This document shows, piece after piece, positions 14,792 to 61,510 of a stretch of DNA of 64,000 nt. The stretch's first letter is position 1. The number at the start of each line of letters is the position of its first letter. The stretch is taken from assembly GCA_965644315.1 (NCBI GenBank), contig CBFFRQ010000067.1, forward strand, positions 248,001 to 312,000, given 5' to 3'. The notes below the pieces were generated by a model. It was not told the origin of the DNA. It saw nothing but the letters and a program-made list of their open reading frames with translations, and did not search any database. This DNA is from Caecitellus pseudoparvulus (lineage: Eukaryota > Protista > Bigyra: Bicosoecida). The position numbers and the translations under genes were made by a program.

Positions 14792-17700
14792 ATGTCTGCT
14801 TCTGGTATAGGTGGGTCGGTCACAGGTATCGGTCCCGTGGATGCGTTGATCGATGTGGCTCGAGGGCCGTGTGTGGACAGCGTGGCTGTGCGAGGCGAAG
14901 TTGCAGAAGCTCTGTTGGGCCTGGCTGGCGCAGTGGGGGAAGCCATGCCCGGGACGGGGCAGTGGCTGGGTGTGGAGGGACAGCTGGAGGTACTGGGGCG
15001 TATTGAGGCCGGGTTAGTGCGGGTGCTGGAGGAAGAGAGGGGCAAGGTGCATGCTCGAGCTGAGCGAGGCTTGAAGCGGCTGTGCTGGTGTGTGCAGGTG
15101 GCACAGGGTGCGTTGCAAGACATGGTGCGGGGGACACTGGTGCGAGATGAGTGGGTGGATGGTGTGCGGTTGGACCGTGTGTACGGGAGCATTGTGGGTG
15201 CGTGGCGTCGGGTGAGCTTCTGGCTGGAGAAGTGCGATGCTCCTGAGGCTGTGCTGCGTGGGGTGGCAGCTTGGGTGCCGCGGCATGTGCGGGGTGTGTG
15301 TGGCGAGGGTAGTGCGCGAGATGCAAGAGGAGCGGAGGTGGGGACGGGTGTGGATGCTGCTCAGGCCATGCTGACCGCCGCTTCTGAGCGGCTGAGTGAG
15401 AGCGGTGAAGACGAATTGGCAAGTGCAGTGGGTGATGTGGCAGGAATGGCAGAGGCTCTGGGCAAGCTTGGGAGTCTTGGTGTGCCGGAGGTGGAGGTGG
15501 TGGAGGGCGATGGCGTGGGAGCGAGTGTGGAAGTGGGTTTGAGTGGCGGTGGGCGTGCGTTCCTGCGGGCCGATGGTGGGGGCATGGTGTTGGAGTGGCG
15601 GAGTGAGTTCAAGATGCCGGTGTGGATGGGGGAAGGAGATGAGGGTGAGTGGGCGGCAAAGTGCCGGAATGAGGTGAATGATGCTGTGTCTGGGCTGTTG
15701 CTGGGTCAACGATTGAATGCGTGGGCAGAGGGTGAAGGTTGTGCGCCACCTGTTCAGGCGTTGCGGGGTGTGGCTGTTCGTGTGGAACAGAGCCATGGGA
15801 GTGGCGCTGATCCACTGGGAGCGTGGACATGCCTTGTGTTGCAGGTGACTGTGGATGCGGGCGTGGCAGTGGCTGACGTGGTCAGCGATGAGGCTTGGGA
15901 GGATGTGGAGGGTGATGTGAAGGCTGTTGTGGCACGGAAGTGTTTGGGCGTGCTGAGCGCCTGTGAGGAGTCAGGGGCTGGATGTGCTGGAGGTGGCGTT
16001 CTGGGGGCACTGGTTGTGGAGGGGGGCTGTGAGATGGGCGGAGGGCTTGTTGGCGTGGCAGGGGATGTGTTGCAGGGCGTGGCATCAGTGCGGTTGTGTG
16101 CTGGGATCGTGGGGCTGGTGGTGGGTGAGGCGGGGCGTGGGGAGTGGCGTGATGCACTGAGGAATGTGTTGGGCCTGGAGTGCAGAGGCGGGGCTGATGG
16201 TGGTGATGGCGGCTTTGATGGCGAGTTTGCTAAAAGTGGTGAAGGGGGTGTTTGGAGCAGCAGTATTGATGTGGGCGGGAGCCATGGCCTGGTGTGTGCG
16301 GCCCAGCACTTGGGGAGTGAGTGTGATGACGGTGTTGGAAGGGCTCGGGGTGAGGTGGGCGACTGTGGGATGGTGCGAGTATGGAATGCTGTGGGTGGTG
16401 GTCGGAGGGATGCGCAGGAATTGTGGGATGGAATGCGTATGTGGCGTGTCGATGTCAAGGTGAGAGGAGATGTTCAGAAGGCAGGAAGGTGCAGTGGATT
16501 GGTTGATGTGGTAGGGAAAGTGGGGCGACTGTTTGGGCAGGGGAGTGATAGGAGTGGTTGTGTTGGGGTGTGGAGAAGCGTGGTGGGCGGAGGTGATGTT
16601 GTGTCGAAAGTAGCTGCACACATGAAAGATGTGGCTGGGGTTGATGATGGGGCATGGTGTGGGAAGGATGTGGACGTTCACAGTTTACGTCGAACAGCAG
16701 AGGCAGGTGATGCTTGTGATTGTTGGGAGTTTGGCCTGATGTATGAGAACGGTACAGGTGTAGAGAAGAACAAGGCTAAGGCTGTGCGGTGGTACAGGGC
16801 GGCGGCGGAGCAGGGGCACGCGGAAGGGCAGTACAGCCTTGGTTTGATGTACGAGACCGGCAGGGGTGTGGAGAAGGATGAGGCTGAGGCTGTGCGGTGG
16901 TACAAGGCGGCGGCGGAGCAAGGACATGCGGAGGGGCAGTACAACCTTGGTACGATGTATGACAACGGTAGGGGTGTGGCGAAGAATGAGGCTGAGGCTG
17001 TGCGGTGGTACAAGGCGGCGGCGGAGCAAGGACATGCGGAGGGGCAGTACAACCTTGGATTGATGTACGAGACCGGCAGGGGTGTGGGGAAGGATGAGGC
17101 TGGGGCTGTGCGGTGGTACAAGGCGGCGGCAGAGCAGGGACATGCGGGGGGGCAGAACAACCTTGGTCGTATGTACTCGCATGGCAGGGGTGTGGCGAAG
17201 GACGAGGCTAAGGCTGTGCAGTGGTACAGGGCGGCGGCGGAGCAGGGACATGCGGGGGGGCAGAACAGCCTTGGTACGATGTACGCAAACGGCAGGGGTG
17301 TGGCGAAGGATGAAGTTGAGGCTGTGCGGTGGTACAGGGCGGCGGCGGAGCAGGGACATGCGGGGGGGCAGAACAACCTTGGTACGATGTACGAGACCGG
17401 CAGGGGTGTGGGCAAGGACGCGGCTGAGGCTGTGCGGTGGTACAGGGCGGCGGCGGAGCAGGGGCACGCGGAAGGGCAGTACAGCCTTGGTTTGATGTAC
17501 GAGACCGGCAGGGGTGTGGAGAAGGACGCGGCTGAGGCTGTGCGGTGGTACAAGGCGGCGGCGGAGCAAGGACATGCGGAGGGGCAGTACAACCTTGGTA
17601 CGATGTACGCAAACGGCAGGGGTGTGGCGAAGGATGAGGCTGAGGCTGTGCGGTGGTACAGGGCGGCGGCGGAGCAAGGACATGCGCTGGGGCAATTCAA

Positions 17701-22743: not shown

Positions 22744-25700
22744 TCACGCCGCGTCCATGTCGATGGTCAGCTCCCCCGTTGCGTCATCCACGAGCAACGG
22801 CAGACGGCGGCCACTGGCATCGAGCACGAACAGCTCCCCCGTGTTCTCGTCCTCAAACACCTCCAAGTCGCCCTCCACGCTGGCCTCGCCGTCCTGGCCC
22901 ACGCTCACCCGCCCTGACGTGCCCAGGCCTTCCAGAGGCACGCTCCGTGCAGGCCCTTGCCCGTCCACACTGGCGGTGGCGCCAGCAAAGACGGCAGCTG
23001 AGTCTGGCCCGCCGCCATGCCATGCTCCGCCCCTGCCGTCCTGTGCCAGGGACGTCGCGCCCTCCACCGTGCTCCACCACTTGGCCTCCATGGCGCGGCG
23101 TTTCTTCGCCGCGAGCAACTCCAACATTGCGCGCTCCTTCTCGTACTCGGCCATGTCCAGCGCCATTTGCTGCCTGAACTTGAAGGTGCGGAAGGTGTCC
23201 CAAATGGCCCGGGCCGCGTAGATGTGGGCGATGCCGTGGCTCGTGCGCTGGACGCCTGACGCGCCGCGAAGCGTCTCCCACCGCTGCGTCACGGAGTGCC
23301 CTGGTGGCAGCTCCATGAGCTCTAGGTCCTCCTCGCTCTGGGCCAGCACCCGCTTGGCTGTGGCGATGGCGACGTCTGAAAAGTGGACGAGGTTCCCGGC
23401 ATACGTGGGAATGTCCATTTCCCGGATGCACCCGACCACCTCCTCCTCCTTCGCTTCGTGGCCGTCGCCGAATCCGAGGGGGGCCGGCAGCAGGCGCAGG
23501 AAGAGGACAAGGCGCTCGGTGGTGATGAACATTGTCGCGTGGGGGTCCAGCTGTGTCCACACCACTGAGAAGCGCTCCAGCTGCTGTTTGTCCAGCCGCG
23601 CATCTTCGTCGGACGTGACGTCAGCAAAGCCCTCCAGAATCACTGCAACGAAAATCTGCAGGGCGACGAACGACACCAGCAGCTCGTAGGTGTAGAAGAA
23701 CGGGACGGCAGCGGGCGTGCCACACCCTGTCGGCGTTTCGTCGTCCCAGCGGGGGTCGGGGTTGCAGTCGCTCTCCACAGCCAAGTCAGCCATGAGCCCG
23801 TTCCAGTTCTCGCCCGTGCTGGCTGAGATGAGTGTGAGCATGCCGTCTGGCCAGGTTCGGAAGTTCGCGTCGGCAGTGTGCACCTCCCCGAACTTGACCA
23901 GTGCGAACAGCTGCAGCCCCATGACGGCGTAGATGAAGAGCAGGAGCAGCAGCAGGCTGGCGACGTTGCCGAGGCTGGGCAGCGTCAGGATGAGCGTGTT
24001 GAACAGCACCCGCAGGGCCTTGGCTGTGTTGATGAGGCGCACGATGCGCAGGACACGGAAGGTACGCACGACTGTGGCGATGGAGCCGACGTCCACTTGC
24101 AGAGTGGCGGTGAGGATGAGGCCGAAGTTGGTGCCGACAACTATCGCGAAATCGAACCTGTTCCAGTTGTCCCGGAAGTAGAAGGACGCGCCCAGGGCGT
24201 AAATCTTGGCAGCCGCTTCCAGGGAAAAGAGCACTGCAAACATGAGGTTTGCGGCGTCCAGGAGCTGCCCGTACTCATCTGGCTGCCCGAAGAACTGCAT
24301 GGCCATGACCACGGTGTTGGTGAGGATGGCGCCCATGATGAAGACGTCGAAGGAGGGCGCCGTGACGACGTCGTACAGGCGGGCAGGCCACTTGCTGCGC
24401 GGGCGCAGCGGTCGCGGCCGGGGGCGCATTTGCTGCAGGAGGGTCTGTGTGCGCACCCACTCCACTTGCGCGGGCGTCAGGAAGAAGTTGTCCGAGCCCT
24501 CCGCACGCAGGCGCGTGAAGGAGTCGATGACCACGCCCACGAACATGTTCAGCAGGAAGAAGCCGCCCAGCACCTGGAAAGCGATGAAAAACGCCACCCA
24601 CGCCGGCTCGTTGTTCTCCACCGGCTGCATGTCCACCCCCCGCGCGTCCACCCCTGCAAGCATGACGTCCACCCACTGCTCCGTCGTGCTCACTTCGAAC
24701 AGGGCCCCCATGGCGTTCAGGGAGTTGTCAAAGTCCTGGGAGCGTGTGCGCTCGAATTCCGCACCCATCCACTCACACACCGCTCGCGACGTCGTGCCAG
24801 CGTACGAGGGGATGGCGCTGGGGTCCACCTGCACCTGCGGATTTGCACCAACAGTCAATGGCGCGTTGGAGCCACTCTGCACGGCTTGCTGGAAGGCCAG
24901 CGCAGCAGAGGCGTTGGGGAACGCTGACTCTGCGTTGCCGCCCCACCACAGCACACGCTGCGTGGGGCTCAGAGTCGAAAACGGCACGGGGTACACGACG
25001 GCAGCCTGCTGTTCTGGGGACATGCCCTCCCACACGTGGCCCTGGCAGGCGTAGAAGGTGCCCTTGAAGTAGGACACGCCCACGACCCCGAAAATGAGGA
25101 AGAACAGCAGGCACACCAGGAGCACGTTGAGGATGGCAGGCACTGCGCGGAAGAGCGAGTTCACCACCAGACGCAGGCCTGGGTTGCGCGAGATGACGCG
25201 AAGGGGGCGCAGAGCGCGCAGAGATCGGAGGGCCCGCAGGCCGCGCAAGTCAGTCAGCCCAGACAGCGTCACAGTTGACAGGGCGATGATGCCAAAGTCC
25301 AGGATGTTCCAACCCGACTTCAGATACGCGCCGGGGCCCAGCAGGAAGCCCTTGGCCAGGATCTTCAACAGCGCTTCTGCGACAAAGGCTGCCGTGAACA
25401 CGACATCCATCACGTACAGCGCCCGTGCCAGCTGGGATGCCGGGTCCAGGAGGGGCGAGTCCACGGCCAGCATGACGCTGGAGATCAGGATGAGCACCAG
25501 GATGACGTTGTCAAAGATGGGCGATGTGACGACGCTGTACGCAGCTCGGCGGACGGCCGACTCGGCGCTGAACAAGCACAAGCTCCTGCCCATCATCGGC
25601 ATGTGTTGGCTTTGCCCATTGCCACCGTCCGTACTTGCCGCGTGTGCGTCAGTGGCCTCAGTGGACGCGTCAGTCGGCTGCAGCAGCCTCGCACAGCAAG

Positions 25701-28700
25701 GCACACGCATGCACGCGGACAGGCACTGGAAGCAGCACAGGTCCACGCCCTGCAGGTGTTTGGGCGCCACACTGCCATGTTGGGGCGAGGGTGGCGCCAC
25801 CACCCCGCCCGCGCTGCTGTCCACGGTGGTGCTTCGAATGGTAGCCCAGGCGCTCTTGCCTGCAGGGCGGGGGCCACCAGCTTTGGCCATGGATGTCACT
25901 TTGAATGCGTGCGCCCCCCCTTCGTCGCTGCTGAGGGGGGTGGTGGGTCCACCGCCCACGGCTCGGCGTCCGCCCACCAGCACCGTCGTGCGAGCAGTCG
26001 GAGACAGGCTGCTGCTTGCGGGCTCTGTGCCGCTGGCGTGAGGCATGGAGGCGGTGCTGCCCGTGCCGCGATGTCCGCTCATGCCCCAGCAACACCAGTC
26101 GAACCAGGTGCAGCAGCAAAACTGCGCCTCGGCAGCAAGCACCTGCCCACTGCTGATGGGCTCTGGGGCGCGGGCTGCTGAGGCGGCTTTCTGCGCAGTG
26201 CTGGCAGTCTTGGCGTCTGTGGGCGACGGTTGGGCGGACTTTCCCACCCCCCACGCCTGTGTGCTGCGGCGGTGTGAGGAGGCGCCACTGGTTTCTGTGG
26301 ACAGCGAGTCACTGCCCACCACGAGCACCTCTGCGTCACTGCCCGCCGGGCGCCAGCCACTGCTCCCCGAGTGCTTCGCATCCATCTGCCAAGCCCCCCG
26401 TCTGCCCCCCTGCCCATCGGTTGCCAGCGGGTTCTGCGCGAACGGCGAGGGGCCGGCTGCGTGGAAACTGCCGCTGGAAAGCGAGGCCGCGGGGGAGCCA
26501 GCTGCAGAGGGCGACACGGGTGCCCACCGCCCAGGCGCAGCTGCCTCCGAGCCACTGCCCCGCTCTTGGCCGGAGCTGAAGGAGCCGCGGCGGCTGGAGC
26601 TGTCGTCGTCGCTGAGCCCGGCAAAGTCGAAGAACGCCGGCTCGGAGCCCGCGCCAGAGCGGGTGGAGGGGTGGGGGCTGATGAGTTGCATGGTGACGGG
26701 GGCTGGCTGACCCGGCCGCCCCCCCGACGGGGAGCCTGGCGGGGAGTGTGGGGACAGTGCCGAGCCGCTGGGCGGCCGTTCCAGGCGGAACGATCGCACG
26801 CGCACCTGGTGCTTGCCGAGAGAGCGAATGCTGCCAGTCGGCGACGGGGGCCGTGCGCTGCCCTGGATGCTGCTTGAGCCAGCGGCGCGTGCCAGGGCGG
26901 CTGCGATGGGGTGCTGCTCGCCTGCCAGACTCATGCTTGCAGAGGCAGCTGACACGTCGCCCATGCTGGGGTGGGGGTATGCTCGCAGGTGGTCAGCGTC
27001 AGAGAGCGAGTCGGCGACGGAATCCACACCAGTGAGGTACGTGGCTGCCTGGTCGTGTTCCGAGTCACTGTGTGGGGCGGCAGGCTGCGCTCCTACTGAC
27101 GCAGTGCGCCCACGTCGAGCTGAGCGCTTCGTCGCACTGCCCGGACCCAGAGCGCTGTCCACCCCCACCGTTCCTCGAGACAGCAGTCGAGGAACGGCCG
27201 AGGTAGCATCGCCCGACGTCCCCGCACTGACGCGCGAGGCAGTAGAGTGCTTCCGTGTGGAAGAGGTGACACCAGAGGCAGCCAGGTTTGCGGAGATTTT
27301 ATCTCGATGGCGAGAAGGCGACAGCAGTGCCAGGGCGCGAATGCTGCCCTTTGACGCGCTCAGAGCCGACGTCAGACTCTGCACCGTGGACCTGTGCTGT
27401 TTGCGGGACATGCCTGCAGTGGACGCCTCACGAACCGCCCGAGTGGCTGACGACAGCGTACTGCGCACAGAAGGCGTGTCGTCGCCCGCCACCACAGCCA
27501 TGACGGGGGGCGCACCTGCTCGGCGCCTGCGACGTGCCGTGTCGTCGGAGCTGTCTCCACTGGGCGGCGGCGGCGGCCCCCCTCGCAGGCGCCGCGACGA
27601 GCGGGAGGCACTGGCGGCCAGGTCGCGCCTGGAGGCATGGCGGTGAGTGCCTCGGCTGCCACGACTCCCTATGCTGCCGGTGCTCGCGAAGCGTTTGTGG
27701 CTGCTGCGTGTACGTGCCAAGCCGGCCACCTGGCTGCGGGAGGTGGGGGACAGGAGTCCCTTGCCTGTGCTGGACAGCACCACGCCAGACTCCTCCAGGT
27801 CAATGTGCCCGTGCGACCGAGACCCGAAGTTGATGCGCCCTGCCGACCGACTGCCGATGCGCCGCATGCGACCGTGCAGTGTGCCACGGTCGTCGTCCGA
27901 ACCGCCGTTGGCGCCGGCCAGACCCCGCAGGGAGCGGCTGCCAATGCGACTGGACCGGGAGCCAATGGACGCCTTGGACCGCCCAGACAGCGGACGTGGC
28001 TGCACCAGGCGGCCCCGAGACAGTGTGCGCTGCAGAGGGCTCTTCCCGAACTCTGCCGTCTTGGCGGGCGAGTCACCGACCCGGGATTTGGACCTGCTCA
28101 GCGCCTGCAGACCGGACATGAGCGTGCGGCCCCCTGGCCCGGCCGCATCACCCCCCTCCGCGGCAGCAGGCCCATCGCTGGCCTTGGGTCGGCCCAGGCT
28201 GGCGACCAGGGCTCGTGTCTGCACACGCGCGAACATGGTGGCACGACGACTCTTCGTGCGCAGTGTCCCCGCAGGTGTCATCTTCATGGGCTTGTCCGGG
28301 GACAGGATGGGCGACCCAGGCGCCTTGGCGTCGTACCCCGCCAACTGACTGGGCAGCTCCCCCGCTGCCACGGCAGCCTTGGCCGCGGCAGTGGCTGCAG
28401 CCACAGCACGCTTCTTCTCCCGCGCGTTCTTGCCAGCGTCTTTCCAGTTGCTGACCATGGCAGCGAGGGTGGCGAGCTTCACCATGGCCTTGTCACGGCG
28501 ATGCACCAGCTCGCTGCGCCGTGCCTCCCACTCCGCCTGCCGCTTGCGCAGGGCGATGCGGGTGGCCTTCAAGCTGCGCACGGCCGTGTCGTCGCGCAGG
28601 CGGTTGACGAGGCTGGTCACAGGCTTCGCGAAGCGCACCTTCATCATGGCGATCATGCGCAGCACCATGAGGTTGCGGGCAGTCACCAGACGCGCCAGGC

Positions 28701-31700
28701 GGGGTTGTCCGTGTGCGCCGCCTGTGCTGCTGAGGTGTGCTGCATCTAGCTTGAAGGCGAGGCCCGCCGTGGGCAGGTCGACGTCCTCGTCAGTGGAGGT
28801 GGCGCCGACGTCGGCACCTTCGAAGTTGCCCAGCAGGATGGCGAGGAAGAGGTTCAGGATGACGAAGTTGCCCAGGACCACGAGAGCCACCATGTACACC
28901 ACCCCCACCACGCCCGTCGCGCGCCAGGCACTGTACATGAGGGATGGCCAGTCTTCCCCCGTCAGCACTTGGAAAATGGCGACAGACGCCCACAGCAGGG
29001 AGTCGAAGTTGGACCGCGGCACGTCAGCGTCGAGGTACCCGTCCTCCCCCATGACGAGGGCGGTGCGGGACTTGGGGTGGAATCGGAAACGGTTTGCGAA
29101 CAGTTGTTCGCCGATGAGGGCAAAAATGAAGATGAACAGCAGCAGCAGGACTGAGAAATTGGCCACGTCGGCCAGTGTCTTGGTCATGGCGTTCAGGAGC
29201 ACACGCAGGGAAGTCCACGAACGCGCGAGCTTGAACACGCGGAAGAGCCGGAACGTGCGCAGGGCTGAGATGCCGCCGCCGCCGTCAGTGTCTGCGCCGC
29301 CTCCCACGAGGAAGGAGGGCGGGCTCAGACCCAGCTCCAGCAGGGACACCAGCACAATGAACGCGTCGAAGATGTTGAAAGCGTCGGAGACGTAGTCTCG
29401 AGGGCCCAGCGCGAACAGCTTCAGGCCCATTTCCACCACGAACACCATGGAAATGGCAAAGTTCGCAATCTCCAGGTTCGTCGCAAGCACCGGTCGCAGC
29501 GGGTACTGGTCCAGTGCCAGCACGACGGTGTTGGCGATGATGAACGCGACGATGGCGCCGTTGAACCACCCTGACGCCACCACACGTTGCACCGCCATGC
29601 GAGCAGCCAGCAGACACCCAGCCTGGGGTGCCTCCCCCCCTGACGCGTCCACAAACTCGTACAAACTGCCCTCTGCGGCGTTCGCCGCCTGCTCCGCCGT
29701 CGAGTACTGCCCGAAGAGGGCGGCTTTTTGCTGCTCCAGGGCTTTCTGCGCAGCGCCCGTGCGCGTGCTCTGGCGTCGCTGGCGGGCCGATGGGGTGAGC
29801 GCACCGCTGCCACGTGGAGTGGGCGGGGCTTGCGGCACCCCGCTTGACGGCGGCCCCTCCGAAGGCGCAGCCTTGCCCCCCCACCCCATCCAGCTCATGA
29901 GTCCCCCTCCTCGCTCGCCATCGCCGTCGCTTGGACTGCCCGGTGCCGTCGCCTTGGCACCATCCTCTGCGCCATCCACCTGCACAGTGGCCAGAGCGGG
30001 GGGGGCGCCTCTCCGCCGCGCAAGCTTGGTCGAACCAGCCCCCGCGCCCTCGCGTGGCTGTGGGGAAGTCGAGCTTGCAGTGGGCGAGGCGGGGTCCCCA
30101 GGCACTGCGGGGCGGTACAAGCTGGCAGGGGAGGCGGCCTCTCCGCCTGCGAGGCGTGTGGAGCCGCCCTTGAGGATGCTGCGCTTGGGCGGGCCACTGG
30201 TCGTGTGATGTGACGGCGAGTGCACCACAGGCTCCGCCACCACGGTGGAGGTGGGGGACACCACACCTGGTGCCACGCTCGCCGCAGATGGCGTTCCCCA
30301 GAAACGCTGCCACAGATTCCGGCGCTGGGGGGTCGCAGCGGACGCGCTGGTGGGTGAGAGGCCCCGCCCCGCCATGGGCACAGCACTGACACTTCCTCGT
30401 CGGCCTGTAAACATGCCTCGCCGAGCACTTTCCGCCCGGGCTGCAAGGGCGCGTTCCGCCGACGCAAGCCCAGGCGGAGGGGCCGCGGGTGACTCCTCCC
30501 CTGAGTCAACTCGCTGTGCACCGTCGCCGGGCCGTGACCCAGGCGGGGTCGGCACGTGCGACGCGCTGCCTGCGACGCTGTCGGGCCCGGATGCCTCGCC
30601 AGGCGCAGAGGCGCCTGCACTGCCGAAGGATGAAGCTGACCGGGTTGACGTGGCGCGGGAGGGCGACCTGCGACCACGCGCGCGACGGCGCCGACGCGTC
30701 CTGCGACGCCTGCGACCCTCGCCGCCCTGCTTCGACCTGGCCTCCTCCTCGTCGCTGGACGACGTCAGGTCGCTGGAGGAGGACGAAGACGTGGCAGGTG
30801 CCTGACTCGGCGCCAGCAAGCCCAGCGCACGGAGGGAGTTGGCCACGAAGCTGTTCTGACGCGACAGGTTGCTTGCCGTGCTGCCGCGGGGTTGTCGCTT
30901 GGCGGGCGGCGGGTGGGGCTGGGGCGCACTAGCCTCCTCGGCAGGCTTGCCCACGGCAGAGGCAGCCGCCAGCCCAATGGAGCCTCGGATGGCGGCCGAC
31001 GCGCTGACACGCCGACGCAGACGCCCAGTGGACGACTTTCGGTGCAACGCCTTGGCTTGCGCTTCCAGCGGCAGCGCCTCTAGCGCGAACACTGTGTCCT
31101 CACCCTCCCCCCCGGCAGCCGCGCCTGCCGCCTCGTCCACCCGGAAGGAGCTGCGTGCCCGGCCCACTGCGCCTGGGCCTGAAAGGGGTGGACTCCGCCC
31201 CGCCCCCTGTCCACCGAGACGCACGTCAGAGGAGGAAAACGTCCTCGCCACGGGCGCCTTGCTGGTCGCAAGTGCCGAGGTGTGCCCGCCGACGTCGATG
31301 GAGCGCTGTGACGAGCTGTGCTGCGACCGCTTCGACCCCTTGCGTGACAGCCTGCTGGTGTGCGAGCGCATGCTGGACTTGGAGACAAGTCGCGCTGCCG
31401 AGCGCGATGTGTGTGGTTTCAGCTGCGCCGGGACAGAGCCGTCAGCTGAGCTGAAGGGGTTGATCACGTCAGCTTCACCGTCCAGTCCGGCGCCCGCCGG
31501 GGTCGCACCAGCCGACCCTTGCCGCTCCCCCACAGGCCCACCCTTGCGATCGCTCGAGTTCGACACGAAACTGCCCTTGCTGGCTCCACGTCGCAGCGAC
31601 CGAGAACGCGACCCGCTGCGCGTCGGCGCATCGCCGCCGCCGAGCAGGCGCGAGCCGAAGCTGCGAATGCTCTGCGCCACCCCGCCCACGATCCCCCGTC

Positions 31701-34700
31701 CGCCCGTTCCGGACTGACTCGTCTGGTCTCGGCGCCTGCCCACTGCCAAGTCGGGATCCGAATCACCGCTCTCTTCGCTGGAAGTGGAGCCGTCAGTGCT
31801 CACGGCGACGATGCCAGCGCCCCCCTGGAAACGGTCCATGGACGAGCCCCGTGTCGAGTGACGCAGCAGAGACTCACCCCGCTTCCGCGGCACGGAGCCT
31901 GCCCTGGCTGAGCTGGCGTGACTGCCAGCTCGAGAGCGTGTGGCAGCTGAGCCGCTGGCCGTGCCGTATGTCCACTCGGAGTCACTGTCGCCCAGCAGGG
32001 AGTCAGAGCGCAGCGAGTCATCATCGGACCAGAACTCCGAGTCACCCGTCATGTACGAGTCACTGTCTGAGTCTTCGTCCCACGCATCGATGTCTTCCAG
32101 CCAGCTCTGCAGGCTGGGCGTGTGGGCGATGGAGGCGGTGGAGGACCCACCGCTGCGTTGACCGGACCCGGCCCCCGACGCACCCTCCTTCGAACCCGCC
32201 GCAGCCATGTGCCGGACGGCGGCGTCGAAGGCCGCGCCCTCCTTCTGGGCCAGGGCCTTGTCGAAGTCCAGCTCCTCGCCACTGGCCCCACTGCCACTGG
32301 CCGTGGAGGGGGGTGCGGCAGCGTCCGCCTTGCCCGCCCCCCACTGCGTGATGTCCACCTCTGTGAGGAGGTCTCGAGAGAGGAGCGATGCCGCGCCCCC
32401 CTCGCCACCCCCCCCATGTGCGTTAAAGGCTGCCAGCGCGGCAGGAGTCAAACCACCGGAGAGACTGGGTGCCTTGGCAGAGCTGCCGCCACCTGACCCG
32501 CCCGCCTTCCGGTTGCCGCCTTTGATGCCCACTGACTCCAGTGAGTCAGCCCCCTCTGGCCCCAGGCCACTGTCCTCGCCCACGCTCACGACGTCTACCA
32601 AGTCCACGCCGCCGCCCACCTGCATGGCAGCGAGCCGCCCCCCCTCATCCGCTTCCTCCGCCATGGGCCCTGTGGGGGGCGAGGGAACTGCCCCTTCCTC
32701 CTCCGCCGCCTTGGGCCGGCGGCGGCGGCGACGACGACGGCGTCGTCCGTGCCTGGCCTCGCGCTCACGCTGCCGCTTGGCTGCTTTGCGGGCGGCCCGC
32801 CGCGCGCGCTTTTCCTCCCTGCGCTGCCGCCGCGCTTCTTTGCGGCGCAGTTGTTCCAGCTTGCGTTCGTGTTCCTCCAGAGCCTGCACTTCCGCCAACC
32901 GCCGGCGCGCGGCGGCTTGGGCCTCCTTTTCCGCCGCATCCTTCGCTGAGAAGGACTCCCACAGCACGGCCAGGGTCAAGTTCAGCATGAAGAAGGCGCC
33001 AAAGAACACCATCAGCGTGAAGATCGTCGCCACAATGATGGGCACGTACGCCCCTTGCAAGTTGTACATCATCTGGCTCCACCCCTCCAGCGTGATGACC
33101 TGCAGAATGCTGAGAAACGCCTGCCCCACCCAGTCGAACCCCGTCAGGTGAAACTGGAACTCTGGCCGGAAGGTGGCCTCCCGCATCACCCGAGCATCAG
33201 AGAAACGCGGGTTGCCCAGCTCGTCGTAGTTGCTGCCGCACACACGCAGGCCGTGCACTGTCACGCGCCCGGCCACGCCCGTCAACGACATTTCCGCCGC
33301 TGTCGCTGCATCTGCAAGGGAGTCGCCTGGCTCAAACGTGCCGAACACAGGCCGCCCATACGGCGACACGTATTCCTGTGCCGCCTCTGCCCCTTGCGCC
33401 TGCGCCACGGCGCTGACGTTGAAGGGGGCGACGAAACTGTCAGCTGCGTCACACCGCCCCTTGCCACCGTTGCCCATGTCACAGGTGAGCACGAGGCTCT
33501 CATCCAACGGCCACGTGCACTGTCGGGGGGTGTGCCAGGGGCTGCTGGACTGTGTCCATCCTGCTTCGTGCAGCGGAATGCCGCCGGCGGAAAACACGCC
33601 CCCGGAACCATCCGCCTCGCCAGCCCCACAGGCAGGGAAGGCCGTTCGATTCTGCAACAGGTGGGCAATGTACGCAACCGCTTGGGGGTACGTGACGTAA
33701 TACGCACGGGCCCCCGTCTCGATATAGTGAATGACGTCTGCGGCGGAAGTGTTGGCGAAGGAGCCTGTCCCCGCCACCGCCTCGGCAACACGGCGCGAGG
33801 GGTGGTCCGTGAACACAGAGTACGGGTGCAGTTGGGGGTTGCCCAGGGTGGGCTGCAGCGCCGTGGCGAGGAAGGAATGCACGAGGTCCCCGGAGGCAGC
33901 AGTGTCGGGCGACGGGCGCTGTGCCGTTGTGGCGGCGCTGGAGTTCGCATCCAATCCCTGCCAGAAGTAAATCTGCTGCTCCCGGAATCGATCCACCGTC
34001 ACGTCGGGTGCGTCGAAGAAACGCTCCGTCGCCTCAAAGTACAGTGGCTGCACGTCACCTGGCGCACCTGGTGGCGGCGTAAGGTGCCAGGCGGGCACGG
34101 CCAGCGGGCGGTCAGTCAACCGGCACCGTGCGTGCAGCAGACCAGCCCACAGCTGCACGCCCAGGATGCCCACGATGGCGAATGCGAAGCCCAGCAGGGC
34201 CAGCACTTGCAGCAGCTTGGGGATGGCGCCGAGCAGCGACGACACCAACACACGCATGCCAGGCAGCACAGTGAGGGAGCGCAGAGGGCGCAGGACACGC
34301 AGTGTGCGCAGCACGGCGATCTGGGGCATGCCGGGGATGGCGCTGACCAGGCCTGACAGCACGACGATGAAGTCCAGCCAGTTCCAGCCGTCGCGCAGGT
34401 ATGCCCCCGTCTCCATCCAGAACCCCATGGCTACCACCTTCATGGCGGCTTCAATGGTGAACAAGACGGTGAACACCACCTCGCTCTCCTCCACCAGCTG
34501 GTTGCGCAGGGAGCGGGAGGGGTCAGGCTCCATCGTCTGTGGGTCCAGCGACTGCAGGCGATAATCCTGCTGTGCCAGTAAGATGCTGTTGGCCACGATG
34601 AGGCACAGGATGACGTTCTCGAACCACCGCCACGTAACCAACCACACCATGGCTTGACGGAAGGGCGACTCTTCCGTGAACAGGAACAGCGACCGAGGAG

Positions 34701-35210
34701 AAAACTGCAGAGGAGGGGGGGTGTGGGGGATTCCAGTCGCTGCGACGGACGAAACGCACGCCTGCAGAGGTCCGCACCCGAAACGTCCGTCCATGCGCGA
34801 CGAAGTTCGTCTCCAAATCGTCCACGCCGAACTGAGACTGGCTTGCCATTCGCACCTGTGTAGCACGAGGGCGGCGGCAGTGACGCCCGCCGCGGAGCTG
34901 GGAAGGGCAGGGGAAACGCCAGGCTCCTCACGTGAGCTCGAACCGCCGCATTCTCGTAGTAGTTCGGCACACGCTTGCCGCCATCGCCATCGATGGAGAC
35001 AGAGCTGTGCTGTGTGAGGGCCGTCGAGCCGATGGAGTGCGTGGAGGCTCCCTTCTTCAGCGGCGCCTGCGAGCTGCCCTGGACTGAATCCGCCCGCCCC
35101 CTCAACGCTGGCCTGCCAGCCTCACGGCGCTGGGAGCTGAGGGTGGAGCTGGGCCCCTCCCCTGCCTGGGCGCCCTGCTGTGCGGAGGCATCCCCAGGCG
35201 ACCCCTGCAT
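22744..35210 (-). CDS. Four-domain voltage-gated cation channel alpha-1 subunit, Cav-type EEEE filter
   Basis: Four 6-TM repeats with S4 segments (LRTLRVLRPLR, LRTFRLFRVFK, LRALRSLRALRPLR, VRTFRVLRIVR); pore loops TLEGW, TGEDW, TTEQW, TGENW; C-terminal LPAPLGFG and IQ-like HIYAARAIWDTFRTFK. Two short predicted 5' introns connect to the ATG at 35210. Confidence 0.93.
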
Positions 35211-38600: not shown

Positions 38601-38874
38601 CATGCCCCCACCGCGCGGTGCCCTGGACTGGGCAGGGCGGCAGCGAACTTGCAGCTGGTTTCCAGTCCCTGTCGCTGGTGCCTTGGTCTGCGGGCGAGGG
38701 GGTGACACAGTGCGCACAGGAGCATGGAGCGTTGGAAATTGGAGGGCGTATAGCGTGTGTGCTCAGCATTGTTGTCCCTTGCCCAGCGTGCGTGGGCGTA
38801 CGTTGCAAGGAGTCAAATGGTGCCGACGCAGCCGTGTCTGCACCGACGGCGGAGGAGCTCGCCCCGCATCCCAT
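35692..38874 (-). CDS. Degenerate ankyrin-repeat protein with N-terminal acylation motif
   Basis: Start MGCGASS at 38874; many LxxAAxxGHxxxVxWLL-type units (AALHGQETAVQYFL, ACVSGSLDMVQ, ACAGGHEHIVQWLL, AAEHGHLEVSSML, AAEWGHVTLLQSLL). Confidence 0.7.
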   Translation of the reverse strand: MGCGASSSAVGADTAASAPFDSLQRTPTHAGQGTTMLSTHAIRPPISNAPCSCAHCVTPSPADQGTSDRDWKPAASSLPPCPVQGTARWGHASEWKGAYGKAQWPPHAWPTGDAQAWPSVNLLRRIAAWAGEGGAGACPEPAVHALALALLGRFAVPLDAPVWGKLLPACLAAADTIRSAASLASAISSHLVSHLPQAGHAPTQHQPRPLDAVTALLHGMQQGVEGDELFVFEVVRGLAGAVGGEHSWPLPLSKGHRWTGSAWDGVSDMWTGQGQLWLAGCQLAAAAGNVPLLRSMSKLVQGGWSGPAQPMVTAWRRGCLLELAALHGQETAVQYFLGPPPPWQPLSLPDNPRAYLSGVAGGSVPVLAALRRLEGHWPSWLSHRDALKWACVSGSLDMVQEVWALPPAPLEFWASDLGGAVEAASGGGFTEVLRWLLAECAAACSQTPSASGALEAATGHASSHALLCAGASRALASAGNTHCVAVAVETLRSLGAFKVFQDAERGKFDEGESATALSLESAILHAAAAAAEKMRWDSSVELLELRGEGHALRAEYAEKLVEASVRSACTGTLLSCLQWVQSAVGAKEWPRAVEAGVLGAAGGGDVHHLVLILRLCVAGFEDFAAASQSEALVDIEALRQASGETGQAVRHLQQAPGVEMDWYAAVLQRACAGGHEHIVQWLLSGAKAGVASLHARSACHAAEHGHLEVSSMLQASLVDAAEDLSPDQHRLFLVSAATAGFSGGLKWLLQGRGLPAFQQTRLQQILSISGSPKAKGVAHAVVLAACASGCVGTVHAALDFAGESFLSQHLDECLLASVTSASAPDSCTAVVSTLLARAHAAPASSTVQAAAQRGSHTVVHQLLDACVGCDDSAPLIALEAAAEWGHVTLLQSLLERTAEEFRQDEDEIDRGGSLLRGQQAAFLQACRAGQPWAASLLLTAASSDASWDKVQAQAWAMASAHGQEATLAVLFRAASEDVRAGLLHNATALLQRAVANDWPHLAWWVLNLTHKEHSGARRVGAVGMCSMASLERKARRSAAWACVGAFRAAAMQEPVEDGKT

Positions 38875-39395
38875 GAGAAGCACAGGAGACCTGTGCGCGC
38901 GGAGAACGTGCAACTGGGTGCTTGTGAGCTCGAATGGTGAACCCTCGTGCAGCACCGGGCAGGTCTGTGCGTGCGGCTTGAGCGGGCAACTCGGCGAGGT
39001 TGGGCCAGGTCGCCGCGCTGCGAATCGAGTTCAGAGGCTCAGGGGACGAAGCACCAGACCGGAAGCAGTATGCAGGAAGCCCCATATACAATGGGCATGA
39101 TACCGCTCTGCTTCTCACCTTCAGTTCAGAGATTGGCCCAGGAGAGCGGTGACTGGCAAGCGGCGTTTCATGTGCGCAACGCCGTCGCCAGCAACTGCGA
39201 GCAGAGCAGGCCACTCAGCACTGCGCAATGTGCCGCGCTTCCCAAAATGACCCAGGTGCACAGCCCCACAAGCTGCACCTTGCAATCCACCGCGCAACAC
39301 TCGCCAGCTCGCACCCTGCCTGCCATCGAGCACTTACGCGTTGTTTCTGGTCTGCGTTTTGACGAGCAGCTGCAGCTGCCGTGGGCCGGCACAGC

Positions 39396-41282: not shown

Positions 41283-41341
41283 AGAACCCCCGTCTGTGAA
41301 TGCATGTTGCTGCTTGTGGGAGGAGGGGGTCCAGTGTGCCG

Positions 41342-44001: not shown

Positions 44002-47000
44002 TTACATGCGCAACCCACGCAGCTCAACAGGCAGGTACGCGTCTTTGAACAGCCCCCACCAGCCAGCGAAGTCCACGAAGTCTGTATCAGACAGATGTGG
44101 TGCGTCACTTGAGCTGACGTGAACGTAGTGCACGTCGAAGTGTACGTGATCCAAAGTGACTTCCGGGCCAGGGCCACTGCCGACGCCAGCCAACAGCTGC
44201 TTCATTGTGCGCTCATCGTGGCCAGCCTTCTGCAACTCCTCCAAAGTCTGCTGCTTGATGGTGAAGCGGACCCTGCCCACACTCTCCCCGGATCCGCTCT
44301 GCTCAGCCTCGTCCTCAGTCTCTGCCTGAGCCTGACACACCAGCCTCACTGGCATGTCCATGCCGTGCAAGATACAGTTGGCAATGGTATGCTGCCCGTC
44401 TACCTCCTCCTTGGCCTGATCCACCTGCAGCTTGCTCCCAGCCAGACCTGGCGATGCACAGCTGCGGTTGATCATGAACGCCAAGACATCGATGCAGTGT
44501 CCGCTGACGTCCGAATCTTCTGGCAAGCCAAGCTGCGCCAACACCTTCTTGGGGACTGCGGCCTTGCCCTGGCCGTGCCTAGCCATGGAGCTTCTGCTCG
44601 CCTCGACGAACACCACCGAGAACCGATGGGGCTTGCGCACGTCAGATCCGCTCTCGCCGCTGTCCCCATCAGCATCTGCTGCTCGGGACACAATGATGAA
44701 GTCCAAAGCAGGGAAGCTTCGCGGAGTCCGGACCACGCGGCGCTCGCCAGGGCGCATTTGCCTCCACTTCCGCAAGGCACCCAGGTCAAGGACTTTCCCC
44801 CCACCCTTCCCCCCCCCCGCAGCGCGGAGCATGTCGTCGTTCCCCAAGGCCCATGCGTTGAGGGGCACGGTGGACAAGTCCTGCGACCCCAGTGCGTGGA
44901 GGGGCGGGGCATGCCGCGGGCTCGCCGACCCCAACGGGGTCATGCCTGCCCCAAGCAAGCCCAGTAGCAGGATTGTACGGGTGTGCTTCACGAATTCGTC
45001 ACTTCCAGGAAGCAGTGTTGCGGCCTCCAAGAAATCTGCAACCGCTTCGTGCACGGCAGGATCCGTGACCTTGGATGTCTGCAGCAGCTCCCCAAGGGCC
45101 TTCACCATGGCCACCAGTGCCGCGGAGGATGACAGCGTTGCCGTCCTGAGAGTTGGCAGACGCGGGTCACGATGGTGGACCCGCTGGACAATCGACGAAG
45201 TTGTAAGACTGGCAAAGACGTTGCAGCCCTTGTCGAGGCTGAAGTCCTTGGCTGGGTCCGCCAGCATGGTGTTAAGTTCTGCTTCCTTGTCCTCCCAGTA
45301 CGCCACACACTGGCTCTTCATCTCTTCGATCCGCCCCACCAGCACACTCTGAGCGTGCGCTTGAAATGCATCTGCATCTTCAAACACGGCATCAGGCGCG
45401 TCCTGAAGCAGCCAGTGGATGCTGCGTGTGTCCCCTGCCACCAGTCGCACGTAGCCCTCCAGCGTGCGTGAGTACGCAGCATCTTTCATCTTCTCCCGGC
45501 GCTTCTCTGGCACCTGCAAGCACAAGTCCTCAGGGCTCTTGAAGCAGCTCTCGACCTTGGAGCCCTCCTTCACTGACACACCGCGCCCTGCGCATTCATA
45601 CCCTGCAGTACCCTTCAACAGTGCCAGTGCTAGGTCGGGCGGCACTTGCCTCATTTCAAAGAATGGGTGGTGGTCCCAAGCAAAGAATGGCAGTTTGCGA
45701 CGATGTACCTTCGAGTCAGGGGAGTATGCGAAGAGGTACTGACCTGTCTGGGACCAAGCCGTTGTAGAGAACCAGAAGCCTTCCACTGACCTTGTCATGC
45801 TTGAGTACAAATCCGGATCAAAGTGGTCCACATGGATCCGTTTCTCAAGCCGATTCACCTCATCCATGACCAGTGCGCTGAGACTGTCAGTCCTGACCAA
45901 CGCCATAGGGGACCCGAAGTGTCCATCAATGCCACAGAACAGCTCCTTCGTACCCCGCAGCGCTGTGGCCGGCTTCCCGATCTGCATCAAGGCACGAGAC
46001 ACGTCTGGCCATGACAATGCAGCCCCACACGACAGGCTCAGGCACGCCTGGAACGCCCCGACCATGGTTTCCTCCCACGCACTGTCGTCCAGGGCTGAGG
46101 CGTCAAACTTCGACGTGGCATCGCCGGCACTTGGCAACACAGTGGCTGCATCTGGGAAGAAGGCAACATCGCCCCCTGCCCCGATGCTCACCACAGATGC
46201 AAGCAAGCGCAATGTTGCGGACTTGCCAATGCCATGGGGCCCGCTCAGTGCAACCCCTAGATCGGGAGCATTCAGTGACCGAGCAGCCTGCCGCACTGCC
46301 AGCAGCCTGTCTGGTGTCAGCAGGTGCGTCATGAACATGCACGGCTGCCAGCCAGCATCGATTCTTGCGTCACCGCTCCCCGTCTCTGAAGGCAGCATGG
46401 CACAGTCAAACCCCGGCGTCACAGTCTGCAGCATCACGCCGTCTAAGACCCCAATGTCCACGCGCGTCTTGTTCTGAGCTCGAAGGTGGGCCACAATCTG
46501 CGGGGACACGGGGTACCGCACCAACACGCCACCAACCCTGCCGGCCTGGTCAAAGACTGGCTTGCACCCCTTGCTCCACACCGACGGATCAAGTTCAAGC
46601 GGCGACGCATCGTCGGCACGGGGGCCGCTGTGCTCTGCCATGAACTTGGCCACAGACCACTCGTCGAAGGTGCAATTACGGAGACAATCCCCCAGCTCAA
46701 GCATCCACCCGAAGTTGTCTTTCAGCGCTGTCAAGCTTGCTTCGTCGGCCACTCCAGTGTACGACGACGGCAAGGTGTGCCGCTGAATCATCACGGCCAG
46801 CTCCTGGCTCCTGCCGCTTGCCTGCAAAATCCCACATCTATTGGGAATGCCTACATTCTCAACTGAGCTCTTGCCCGCCTATGCCACGAATGAATCGATT
46901 TCCTCTTGCAAGACTTGGGCCTTCTCATATGTGTCCAGCAGCCCAGAGGTAAAGGCTCGCACAGGCGGGAAAGCTTTCACGCCTGCCGTCTCCAAAAGTG

Positions 47001-49351: not shown

Positions 49352-49559
49352 GGTTGTGCGGAAATTGCACCGATGTCCAAACGCCGCACGTTCGCGAAAG
49401 CGGGTCACACAGGCAGAGGCGTTGCGCAGGAAGCTGAGGGGTGGGCACACTTGAAGCAGGTATCCCGGGGCAGCGCTGTATCTGCCAGTGCATTGGGATG
49501 TGATCGGGAGAGCGTCGGTGCGAGTTGCTGGCTAGTGTGCGCTTGCTCCGCCAGAATCA

Positions 49560-57062: not shown

Positions 57063-57712
57063 GCTGCTGAGCCTGTGGGGGGCACAGCGGGCGAGAGTTG
57101 CAGGGACGGTGAATGTGGGAAGGAAGACATGTGAAGACGTGTGAGATGAATGCAAGGCACGCGCCGCACGCTGCGCCAAGGCTAGGCCCGCTCAGAATGG
57201 GGCGGCAAATGCGTGGCGGTGGAGCGCGGAATTTGAACGCCCCCAGCCCAACAGCCACGCCAGCCCTGCACGCCCCATGCACTGGGCGACACACTGGGTC
57301 GCCAGGATCCGACACGTACTAGAACCTGACTGCACGAAAGGGTGAGAGAAAGCTGCACTGCTCTTGGCGCAAACCCGGACGGCCGACTGCCCTCGCTCTG
57401 TCGTCTGACTGGCTCACTGGCGCAGCTGGGCTGCTGGGCTAGGGGTACACAGACCCGCCACAGGCGAGATGGACCACGTGTGTGACGCCACTGCACACGA
57501 GAGTACATTGGGCGCTGATGGCAGGTTCACTTTTGGCCCAGGGATTTCCAAGGTGTCCTGCTCCGACCGATCGGGTGTCCGGCATTGGCGGGCATTCAGC
57601 TCCTCCCAGCCGGACACCCGGTGTCCAGGAACTGGCCTGCAGACAGTTCTTGCGCCCCCCCTTGAAGGGCCCCAACACAGGACATTTTCTGGTCCCTCGC
57701 GGCGCTTTGCAG

Positions 57713-58900
57713 GGAGAACGGCGTACTACGCCTGCACCCTCCTGCTGCGTCTGTGGGAGGCACATCCCCGTGTGCTGAGCGAGGCGGCGGCCGGTGGCAG
57801 TGGCAGTGGCAGGGGTGCTACGCCTGCCAGTGGCACGAAGCGGCTGCGCAAGGGGGGTAAGGCGTTGGAGTCAGATGCCACCACCACTGCTGCCACGCTG
57901 CACAGTGCGCTGTGGACGTCTCTGGATGCTCTGAACGACATCGTGGTGTTCCCTCACGCGTGGATGCGGGCAGCAGCAGCCAGGTGGCTGGGCGCCGTCT
58001 TGAACACCGTGGCAGTGGCGAGCCTGAGGAGCTGCCCCCCACCGCCTGCCATGGCGGCGTGGCTGGCTGGGGATGAGAGCTTGTTCGCCCTGGCCCGGAC
58101 AGCCTGTGTGCAGCTGGCGGACGGGACGCTGAGCAGGGAGCAGGGCACGGCTCTGGCGCCGGCGCTGCTGTTCACGGCGATAGGGCTGTACGCCACGCCC
58201 CCGCCCAGCTCCCGCAACACCATCCCGCCCCACCTCGTCGAGTGCACTGCTCGATTGGCCGGCAAGTCCACTCTGCTCGTGGGTGGCGTGGAGGTGGTGG
58301 GCGGCAAGGCGGTGCAGCGTGACAGCCCGCCCTCCACACACACCGCCCACAACGACGGAGGCAGTGCGCGGGACCCGCTGTTCTGGCTGCTGCAGCGCCT
58401 CAGCAACACGGCAGTGCAGCAGGGCGGGCCGGCGGCCACCACGGCGCTGAACGTGTTCGGGGCCATGGCTGGGCAGCTGCCGCAGGCCGACCTGCAGCGC
58501 TACGCGGTGCCGATGGAGCGGGCAGTGTTCCGCACTGTGCAGGCGGCAGAGCATGTGGCCAGCAACCTCCGCCTGGCCGACGCGTCATCCTGGTCGGAGC
58601 AAGCACAGCAGGCGGCCGCTGGAGTGGAGGCAGGTGGCGTGGCGTCGGAGATCATGGAGGGTGTGCAGGCTGCCGTGGGTGCAGATGTGTTCCTGACGGC
58701 GCACAACGGCGAGCGGCGAGTCAGGGCGGCGGCGAAGGAGCGGCGGGCGAAGCAGGTGGCCCAGGAGGCGGTGGTGAACTTGGCAGCAGATGCAGGGAGT
58801 CAAAGTTGGAAGGCGCAGGCAAAGAAGCGCCACGTGGTGAAGCGCATGGACAAGTTGAAGGTGGTGCGAGGTGGTGGTGGGAAGGGCGGCAAGCAGGGAG
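57713..58900 (+). pseudogene. Orphan C-terminal fragment resembling UTP20 (U3 snoRNP HEAT-repeat protein)
   Basis: FPHAWMRAAAARWLG, LFWLLQRLS, LQRYAVPM, ASEIMEGVQAAVGADVF, KERRAKQVAQEAV...KRMDKLK follow the order of the UTP20 C-terminus as I recall it; similarity starts at an acceptor TTTGCAG ending 57712; no room upstream for the rest of this very large protein. Confidence 0.6.
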
Positions 58901-59077
58901 GGAGGAGGTTTGAGAGGCGTTCGTGTGGGGTGGTGGGTGGTGAAGAGGTGCGATGCGGTGGTTCTGGTGCGGTGGATTGTGGTGCGGTGTGTGCAGAGTT
59001 TGAGGCGGAGCAGGTGTGCTGGTCATTAGGTGCGTTCAGGTTGGTCGAATGGTGCAGTAGCCATACTCAAGCCAGGG

Positions 59078-61510
59078 TCAGATTCGGTCTGGACTCTCAA
59101 ACCTACCCGCTCGCTGTCGCACGCTGTCTGGGATCCTACGATGCCCAGTGAGGCAAAGAAGCTCACGCACGATAGACGTGTGGCCCATCATTTGTGCCCA
59201 TCGGAAGGCAGCCTCGGGTCCATCCCCATCTGCCGCATGCACATCCACTTCCCGCGCCCCAGTGAGGGCCAGCAGCTCGCGCACGACGTCTGTGCGGCCC
59301 ATGGTGCATGCCCGACAAAAGGCGGCCTCAGGTCCAGTGCAATCTGCCGCGTGCACATCCACTTCCCGCGTCCCAGTAAGGTTTAGCAGCTGACGCACGA
59401 CGTCTTTGTGGCCATTCTCGCATGCGTGTCGGAATGCAGCTTCAGGTCCACCCCGATCCGCCGCATGCACATCCACTTCCCGCGCCCCAGTCAGGCCCAG
59501 CAGCTCACGCACGATGTCTGTGCGGCCAAGGCGGCATGCGTCTCGGAAGGCGGCCTCAGGTCCACCCCCATCCGCAGTGTGCACATCCACCGCCTCATCC
59601 CCCTTCAATGCAAGCAGCTCGCGCACCCTCCCAAGATTGCCAATCCTGCACGCTGCTACAAATGCAGCGGTGTTCGTCTCATTAAATATTTTAAGCTTTT
59701 TTGGGACCGACTGCCCAGCGGATGCGGGCTCAGCTTGAGCTGCCTGCGCCTGACCTTCCGCAGCAGCTGCCTGCTCTCGACCAAGCACATCCCGCACAGC
59801 ACTCTCCACACCTTCCAGACCCCCCAGTCCACCCTCACTTGCTTCACACGCCATCGCATACGCACCCATGCAGCAACCACTCCCTCCCCGCCCCAACACC
59901 TCCAACGCGCCCGACAGTGAATGCTCGCCACCTTCACCGCTCCCCACGAAGCTTGACACGACGCCCGACGCGCCGACCAACGCACCACCTCCAATGCCAA
60001 GCACCTCACGCAGCACACTCGATACACCCTCAACATCAAGGTTGCCGCCATCAGGGCGACCTGCGCCCCACACTCCGCCACATGCACTCAACACCACCTC
60101 ACACCCATCCCCACCCAGTGCCCCCACCAGGTCACCCACACCGCCACCCCCCACACCCACCACCACAAAGCTCCCCACACCCACACCACTCAGACTCACT
60201 CCACATGCCTCCGCCACAGCACACACACCCAGCACCCGCACAGCCACGCGCTGCTTCACCTCCATCCCAACATCACACCACGCTTCGTCCTCCAAGAACA
60301 CCCTCAACGGCCACCCCAGCTCGCACTGCACCTGCACTGTGACACTACTCCTCTCGCCAACCGGCTCATCAGCTCGGCCGCCACCACAGATGTGATTCAA
60401 TGCTGTTTTGCGTGGAGTCTGTGCCATCCGCGGCAGTCCATGGGCAATGCGAGCCGCTTCGCCACGCTTCACAGCGCCAACACTCATGACAAGCGCTGTA
60501 GCACCCGCCTCTACACTCACTGCCCACTGCTCCACATCCCCAGCTCCACCCACATCCTCATCCACGATCTCAACTCGTCCACTGTACACACTCACATCCT
60601 TGCCGTTCAGGCACTCCAAGCCGCCCGACAAGTTCAACCCACCTACAGCCCTCATCTTCCGACCACTCATCACCGGCGCACACACCAACAGCCCCCGCAG
60701 CTCCTCCACCGCACTCGCTGCACTCTCCAAGTGCACCGCAGCACTCTCACTCCTCAGATCGCCTGCCGCCTCGCCTCGCAGCCACTCAGCCTGCTGAAGC
60801 ATGCCAGCCAGAGCCGCATCCGTCGCTGCCTCACCACCGGCAGCACTTGTGACGGGGTCACCCTCACCAGCCACATCTACATCTACCACCTCGAAGCCTT
60901 GCCACCATCGCGTCAGATCAGCCAGCGCACCCTCCACGTTAACACCGCTCCGCACACTGCCCCAAGCACCCACGATGGCGCCCCACACTGCGTCACCCTC
61001 CGGCACTGCATCGACACCCACACCAGATGCTGCCTGATGCAGCACATCCACCGCGCAGAAGCACCGGAACGACAGGTACTGCAGCGCAGCACACACACCA
61101 CCTCGCTCACGCTGCCCCGCCAACAGCCCAGCCTGCTCCAACAGCGCACTCCCCGCATCACGCAGTGCAGCTTCCAGCTCCACCAGGCTCATGGTCGATG
61201 GGGCGTCATCACCTGCAGCAGGCTCCTCGCCACGCCCAATGGCTGCCAGTCCTCGCAGTGCTGGGCCGTGGTCCATGACGCTGCCCGGCAAGCACTTCAT
61301 CTTGCGCAAGCATGCCGCCACCACCTCAGCCTGTGTGACGTCGATGTCTTCAGTGACTGCTGCACTGCTATCCATGGCTTGTCCTGTTGCTGCTGCCTGT
61401 AGTGTGGGGGAGGGGCAGGGCGCTGTGTGCTGTGGTGTGTGTGCGACACGCTCTGACGCAAGTGCTGGCGAAAGCGAGACGCCATGCTCACACCGCTACC
61501 CACGCACCAT
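59078..61510 (-). CDS. ~770-aa protein: N-terminal helical region + degenerate kinase-like module + five 38-aa ankyrin-like repeats
   Basis: ORF 59078-61375, plus a predicted ATG-only exon (61510-61508) and intron 61507-61397 (GTGCGT...CTACAG) adding AAATGQA in frame; repeats EAAFxxACxxGxxDVVRELLxLTGxREVDVHAADxxGP. Confidence 0.85.
59130..59675 (-). repeat. 114-bp tandem array, about 5 units, encoding ankyrin-like repeats
   Basis: GCACATCCAC anchor at 59239, 59353, 59467, 59581 (114-nt period). Confidence 0.92.

Follow-up and report, generated by a model that had tools for sequence, protein, structure and literature searches.

The window analysed here is a stretch of 64,000 nucleotides from the bicosoecid Caecitellus pseudoparvulus (contig CBFFRQ010000067.1, positions 248,001 to 312,000), which lies on contig C67 of a eukaryotic genome assembly of 30.6 Mb in 215 contigs, and it contains two distant genes whose proteins share an N-terminal module and end in different repeat arrays. 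The first gene, the SEL1-clade member, is one open reading frame of 1050 amino acids (aa) at 14792..17944 on the forward strand. It encodes an N-terminal helical domain without known match (aa 1-228; 14792..15475), assigned by homology to the domain modelled for the ankyrin clade, followed by a predicted pseudokinase domain (aa 229 to about 520; 15476..16351), a linker of ~120 aa that is a feature of the SEL1 clade (16352..16717), and 11 SEL1 repeats of 36 aa (16718..17926). The second gene, the ankyrin-clade member, is one open reading frame of 765 aa on the reverse strand (59078..61375), in which the N-terminal helical domain (aa 1-228; 60692..61375) precedes a predicted pseudokinase domain (aa 229-514; 59834..60691) and five ankyrin units of 38 aa (59123..59671), arranged as an N-cap, three internal 38-aa units and a C-cap. 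An earlier note, made from the sequence alone, had described both C-terminal ends, and the 11 SEL1 repeats as well as the five ankyrin units, caps included, were confirmed. The note had also placed the start of the ankyrin gene at 61510; however, codon 5 of that frame is TGA, and the protein therefore begins at the ATG at 61375. The 61510 ATG belongs to a region upstream of the gene (61376..61869, reverse strand), which is common to recent paralogues to about -494, and in most of these its position is in frame and open.

The collinear motif pairs on which the relationship of the two proteins was first proposed are all present, with their order kept. A local alignment of the N-terminal ~530 aa of both proteins reached a score of 269 with 29% identity over 492 columns, compared with 96±14 (maximum 143) for 1000 composition shuffles, 124±21 (maximum 203) for shuffles within 10-residue windows, and 109 for the reversed sequence. 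The real score exceeds all shuffle maxima, the comparison with composition-preserving shuffles being one that the earlier note had asked for; since it beats the shuffles and the reversed sequence alike, the resemblance is not an artefact of Gly/Val content, and composition is ruled out as its source. Composition-adjusted BLASTP recovers the best 116 aa alone (E 8e-5). A profile built from the kinase halves of the ankyrin clade alone retrieves all 11 SEL1-clade proteins at 29-56 bits, against at most 4.5 bits for reversed sequences. The link between the N-terminal domains of the two clades is, judged from sequence comparison, weaker but real: it amounts to up to 10.5 bits, compared with at most 2.7 bits for reversed sequences, and profile-profile comparison across the clades gives a probability of 91.8% (E 7.5e-7) in the second half of the domain.

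Fold and motifs of the shared module

The structure model was made for the ankyrin-clade module, and the kinase fold of the SEL1 clade is inferred from it. AlphaFold2, run on a 40-sequence alignment of the ankyrin-clade module, returned a model with a predicted local distance difference test score (pLDDT) of 83.5 and a predicted template modelling score (pTM) of 0.85. Structure searches with this model aligned residues ~229-514 of the ankyrin protein to protein kinases, with Z scores of 12-15 over 210-240 residues. A search against 48,161 chains placed ALK, a rice receptor-like kinase, rat MLKL, IRAK4 and RIPK2 on top (Z 13.7-14.2), and in a second structure comparison the top five were all MLKL pseudokinase domains (Z 14.2-15.2), with the tyrosine kinases ALK and ITK and with JAK2-JH2 about 1 Z below them. 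Foldseek alone gave a weak best E of 0.005, with a list filled by kinases, and protein language-model features likewise indicate protein kinases. According to the model, the second half of the module is thus a bilobed protein-kinase-like fold, whereas Pfam and PDB sequence searches with the module yielded no match. Matches to maltose-binding protein concerned one 40-residue stretch at an E of 0.006 or worse and were discarded.

The residues that define kinase activity are the β3 Lys, the HRD Asp, the catalytic-loop Asn, the DFG Asp and the Gly-rich loop (PMC4718504). With motif positions assigned by eye on the predicted secondary structure, the β3 Lys is present in 0 of 40 module sequences, the HRD Asp position is occupied by Gly in 32 of the 40, the catalytic Asn position by Ser or Ala, and the DFG Asp position by Ala in 37. 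Additionally, no APE, Gly-rich loop (GxGxxG) or Walker A motif occurs in the 40 modules, and the activation segment is shortened to ~15 residues; the module of the ankyrin gene in the window accordingly has no β3 Lys, HRD, DFG or APE. By these motif criteria the module is not an active protein kinase, and because the activity-defining residues are lost, its kinase half is regarded as a pseudokinase, which is probably unable to bind ATP. The view that the family is not of the NLR type and has no P-loop, put forward in the earlier note, holds, given the missing Walker A motif, the lack of a Pfam match and the kinase fold found instead. Its description of a single unrecognised module stands in so far as no described family matches it, and has to be amended in that the second half is the predicted, catalytically dead kinase fold. 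No housekeeping domain was found for the module in any of the searches made.

In the model of the first 228 aa (pLDDT 88, pTM 0.69), a helical bundle is joined through a flexible link to a helical hairpin. The best structural match of this model is a designed helical repeat protein (Z 7.2), most of the other matches being hairpins of ~50 residues, and aa 34-156, the bundle within the same model at pTM 0.69, resemble generic four-helix bundles at Z 4-5. No search with the N-terminal model lists an MLKL, HeLo or RPW8 chain in its top 50, and neither MLKL_N nor HeLo of Pfam matches any of 46 sequences at E values up to 10; at this model quality, the comparison with the 4HB/HeLo domain of MLKL leans towards the negative. 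A search of the genome with MLKL_N found no match anywhere, the controls included, and carries no information for this reason. Searches of PDB, BFVD and the ESM Atlas gave no match for the domain either, and hydropathy reveals no transmembrane-like stretch in the first 170 aa.

Family size, repeat arrays and mode of duplication

The family was supposed by the earlier note to be an expanded one, and the genome contains far more than two members. A search with the module of the SEL1 gene found 11 strong copies and one with the module of the ankyrin gene 80, and a profile of the N-terminal domain marks 93 places, nearly all without internal stops. The family comprises ~91 copies, mostly intact, in two deep clades of 11 SEL1-type and ~80 ankyrin-type members; in a quick, midpoint-rooted tree each clade has 100% support and includes one of the window genes. 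A burst of ~45 copies lies at 77-87% identity. A profile search of 1.84 billion representatives returned 22 matches outside the genome, several of them near-identical to genome copies; the eight that were examined are ENA or Logan assemblies, and the sequencing runs that hold the gene come from a few coded organisms and marine metagenomes. Scans of viral contigs, JGI metagenome contigs and prokaryotic genomes, which need exact short words and are weak for distant kin, found no relatives. As far as sequence can tell, the family appears restricted to this lineage, and literature searches found no description of such a family.

The C-termini were surveyed in the family loci that were read, ~40 loci of the family lying outside the survey; L052 and L053 are loci of a public metagenome and stand outside the assembly. 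SEL1 arrays occur in 10 of the 11 SEL1-clade genes. The other ends found are ankyrin arrays, one or two ankyrin units followed by SEL1 units, ankyrin units with a coiled-coil-like tail, ends without repeats, and modules that themselves form the end of a 1600-aa protein. The last arrangement is seen at L014 and L015 (G000:C1 and C6) and in P0004, where the module is C-terminal in a protein of ~1600 aa behind 1100 aa without a Pfam match, and no repeats are present.

Two ankyrin-clade modules of the genome, on C154 and C13, are continued in the same open frame by SEL1 arrays. The SEL1 array on C154 shares 78-80% DNA identity over ~1 kb with the array of the window, more than several SEL1-clade members do (75%, 71% and 65-67%), although its module has only 23% protein identity with that of the SEL1 gene in the window. 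Because the arrays are so similar and the modules so distant, the simplest reading is that the SEL1 array moved across the clades by a fairly recent transfer or conversion. The proposal that the SEL1 and ankyrin ends are swappable is thus supported by the members on C154 and C13 and not by the two window genes, which belong to anciently diverged clades and by themselves do not demonstrate swapping. Elsewhere in the assembly, G000:C114 and C32:34-40 kb carry SEL1 arrays at a period of ~600 bp with identical scores and without the module, which may reflect either tandem repetition of a higher order or an effect of the assembly.

Purifying selection acts on the module, with a ratio of nonsynonymous to synonymous substitution rates (dN/dS) of about 0.3 for the N-terminal domain and both kinase lobes in both clades. 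Within the repeat units, variation is concentrated. In the SEL1 units it falls on positions 3, 6, 7, 10, 13 and 14, a helical spacing that places them on one side of the first helix, and in the ankyrin units mainly on positions 4, 5, 13, 16 and 17; by what holds in general for repeats of these kinds, the variable positions probably make up the ligand face. In a split-sample test, one half of the genes served to choose the positions, and disjoint unit pairs from the remaining genes served to test them; the proportion of nonsynonymous differences (pN) at the variable positions was 0.27-0.34, i.e., 1.4-1.7 times the proportion of synonymous differences (pS) in the framework (Fisher p 0.0004-0.005), while pN in the framework was 0.05-0.08. 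These values suggest, and do not prove, diversifying selection on the repeat positions.

Sequence shared among the young ankyrin copies extends upstream from the ATG for about 494 bases, and beside about 30 of them lies, tail to tail, a ~400-codon piece of a different, unrelated gene at 85-91% DNA identity, often broken by stops. In the window this co-duplicated passenger lies at 57718..58935 on the forward strand. It probably derives from an open frame of 4210 codons on C43 (G000:C43 near 619-620 kb), which adjoins a family member. The passenger piece has no Pfam hit and may resemble the C-terminus of UTP20. Retroposition of the young ankyrin copies is excluded by this opposite-strand piece of a neighbouring gene, and the sequences indicate that the copies spread by segmental duplication at the DNA level. 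The decay of the passenger beside a receptor frame that stays open provides a built-in control for selection. No terminal inverted repeats join the ends of the duplicated unit among the 25 longest inverted pairs, and this mark of transposable-element cargo is thus missing from that set. Upstream of the SEL1 gene, at least 1.5 kb (13300-14791) is common to the paralogues L004 and L006, so that SEL1-clade copies, too, arose from segmental duplication. A dispersed repeat of ~180 bp at 57531-57708, which is 76-79% identical to six other places, adjoins the end of the duplicated unit, and some of its copies lie near family members.

In both clades, the coding strand of the young copies shows a deficit of C and an excess of G at four-fold sites, with C at 0.11-0.16 compared with 0.34-0.40 in housekeeping genes. 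This skew is much weaker in the old single-copy members and strong in the window genes 14792-17944 and 59078-61375.

A putative recognition repertoire and its rivals

On balance, we think it probable that the family constitutes a three-part intracellular recognition repertoire, with a helical output domain, a dead kinase as switch or scaffold, and a repeat array as the binding surface. In such a mechanism, the C-terminal SEL1 or ankyrin array would bind a ligand, most likely a foreign protein of a virus, bacterium or parasite, through a face formed by its variable positions. The dead kinase fold would act as a scaffold or as a conformational, autoinhibitory switch; binding would relieve the contact between repeats, pseudokinase and helical domain, and the freed helical domain may then oligomerise or recruit a partner, thereby triggering a defence response. 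Several observations weigh against this proposal. The N-terminal domain matches no known effector domain in the searches made, some family members are without any repeats, and the expression signal consists of short paralogue contigs in two runs guessed to be RNA. Moreover, when pN at the variable positions is set against pS at the same codons, the excess is weak (ratios 0.8-1.5, with one of four tests at p=0.025), and relaxed constraint or gene conversion could therefore contribute to the variation. To our knowledge, the means by which free-living heterotrophic protists detect viruses or intracellular bacteria are poorly understood. The ~90 single-frame candidates of this genome, whose three-part layout is clear, allow recognition to be studied apart from output, and their ankyrin and SEL1 arrays would in addition be natural binder libraries on a fixed framework.

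A more far-reaching version, that the protist independently evolved equivalents of NLR immune receptors, with a pseudokinase in place of the NTPase, a new helical executor, and diversification and swapping of arrays, is possible but tentative. If it is true, the design of effector, switch and sensor evolved a further time, a pseudokinase taking the part of the switch. In fungal NLRs, TPR, ANK and WD repeats of high internal conservation are near-identical and exchanged between genes (PMC13449251, PMC12881547), and the present family resembles them in its three-part layout, the conserved repeat framework with variable positions, the exchange of arrays and the rapid gene turnover. Contrary to fungal NLRs, it has no NACHT or NB-ARC domain and no P-loop, the centre being occupied by the pseudokinase, and it does not qualify as a member of the NLRs. 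Plant kinase-fusion and tandem-kinase resistance proteins likewise fuse a kinase or pseudokinase to other domains in intracellular immunity (10.64898/2026.08.07.743466); however, the fused domains are different ones, the abstracts consulted mention no hypervariable ANK or SEL1 arrays, and the likeness need not reflect homology.

It is unlikely, in our judgement, that the genes encode extremely diverged relatives of MLKL with a fused sensor, which would kill the cell by membrane damage on activation. The domain order corresponds to that of MLKL, which in vertebrates and plants consists of a 4HB/HeLo domain, a brace and a pseudokinase, the N-terminal model with its bundle, flexible link and helical hairpin is reminiscent of it, and the kinase half resembles a tyrosine-kinase-like pseudokinase, for which MLKL domains rank first (Z up to 15.2, root-mean-square deviation 3.6, 220 residues). 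MLKL homologues with C-terminal SEL1 repeats are furthermore reported in Glomeromycotina (PMC8778642), and as in the present family the SEL1 repeats stand at the C-terminus of an MLKL-like protein. However, the family has no sequence match to these fungal proteins in the 1.84 billion representatives; in the present family, moreover, ankyrin predominates among the repeats, and one repeat type is exchanged for another. Against MLKL itself stand the N-terminal domain, unmatched to MLKL, HeLo or RPW8 by structure or Pfam searches, the similar ranking of ALK, ITK and JAK2-JH2 within about 1 Z, the very short activation segment, and the loss of the β3 Lys, which MLKL keeps (PMC4718504). The family also differs in its C-terminal repeat array, in its about 91 copies and in having no sequence similarity to MLKL. 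Since the four-helix bundle is unmatched and the β3 Lys is lost, the family is not filed as MLKL.

We regard it as distinctly unlikely that the proteins are non-immune adaptors or scaffolds, acting in prey handling, signalling or protein sorting, with a structural pseudokinase and repeats that bind various host partners. Ankyrin and SEL1 repeats are generic binders, and the old single-copy members of this genome have conserved counterparts in metagenomic strains, as such a role would allow; however, the ~45-copy burst combines near-identical frameworks with about six hypervariable positions in two unrelated repeat types, which is not expected of housekeeping adaptors. Very improbable is the view that the recent expansion mostly reflects a DNA segment prone to duplication, with redundancy among the majority of young copies: the young ankyrin copies do have the same 5' boundary and carry a neighbouring gene's decaying fragment, and young copies show the strand-specific C deficit at silent sites, but the receptor frames are open in nearly all copies at a dN/dS of about 0.3 while the passenger gathers stops and frame breaks, a contrast that already weakens this view, and the SEL1 clade expanded separately.

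Other genes of the window

A third ankyrin-repeat gene (35692-38955, reverse strand) has divergent repeats and lacks the shared module, being absent from the matches of the module searches. At 44002-46827 on the reverse strand, in a lower-GC stretch, lies an orphan of 941 aa that may be Crinkler/RHS-like; it shows a nuclease-like motif, recognised by eye, and a Walker-A-like one (weak AAA_16, E 0.027). Finally, a 4040-codon gene for a four-domain voltage-gated cation channel occupies 22744-34866 on the reverse strand in one open frame.

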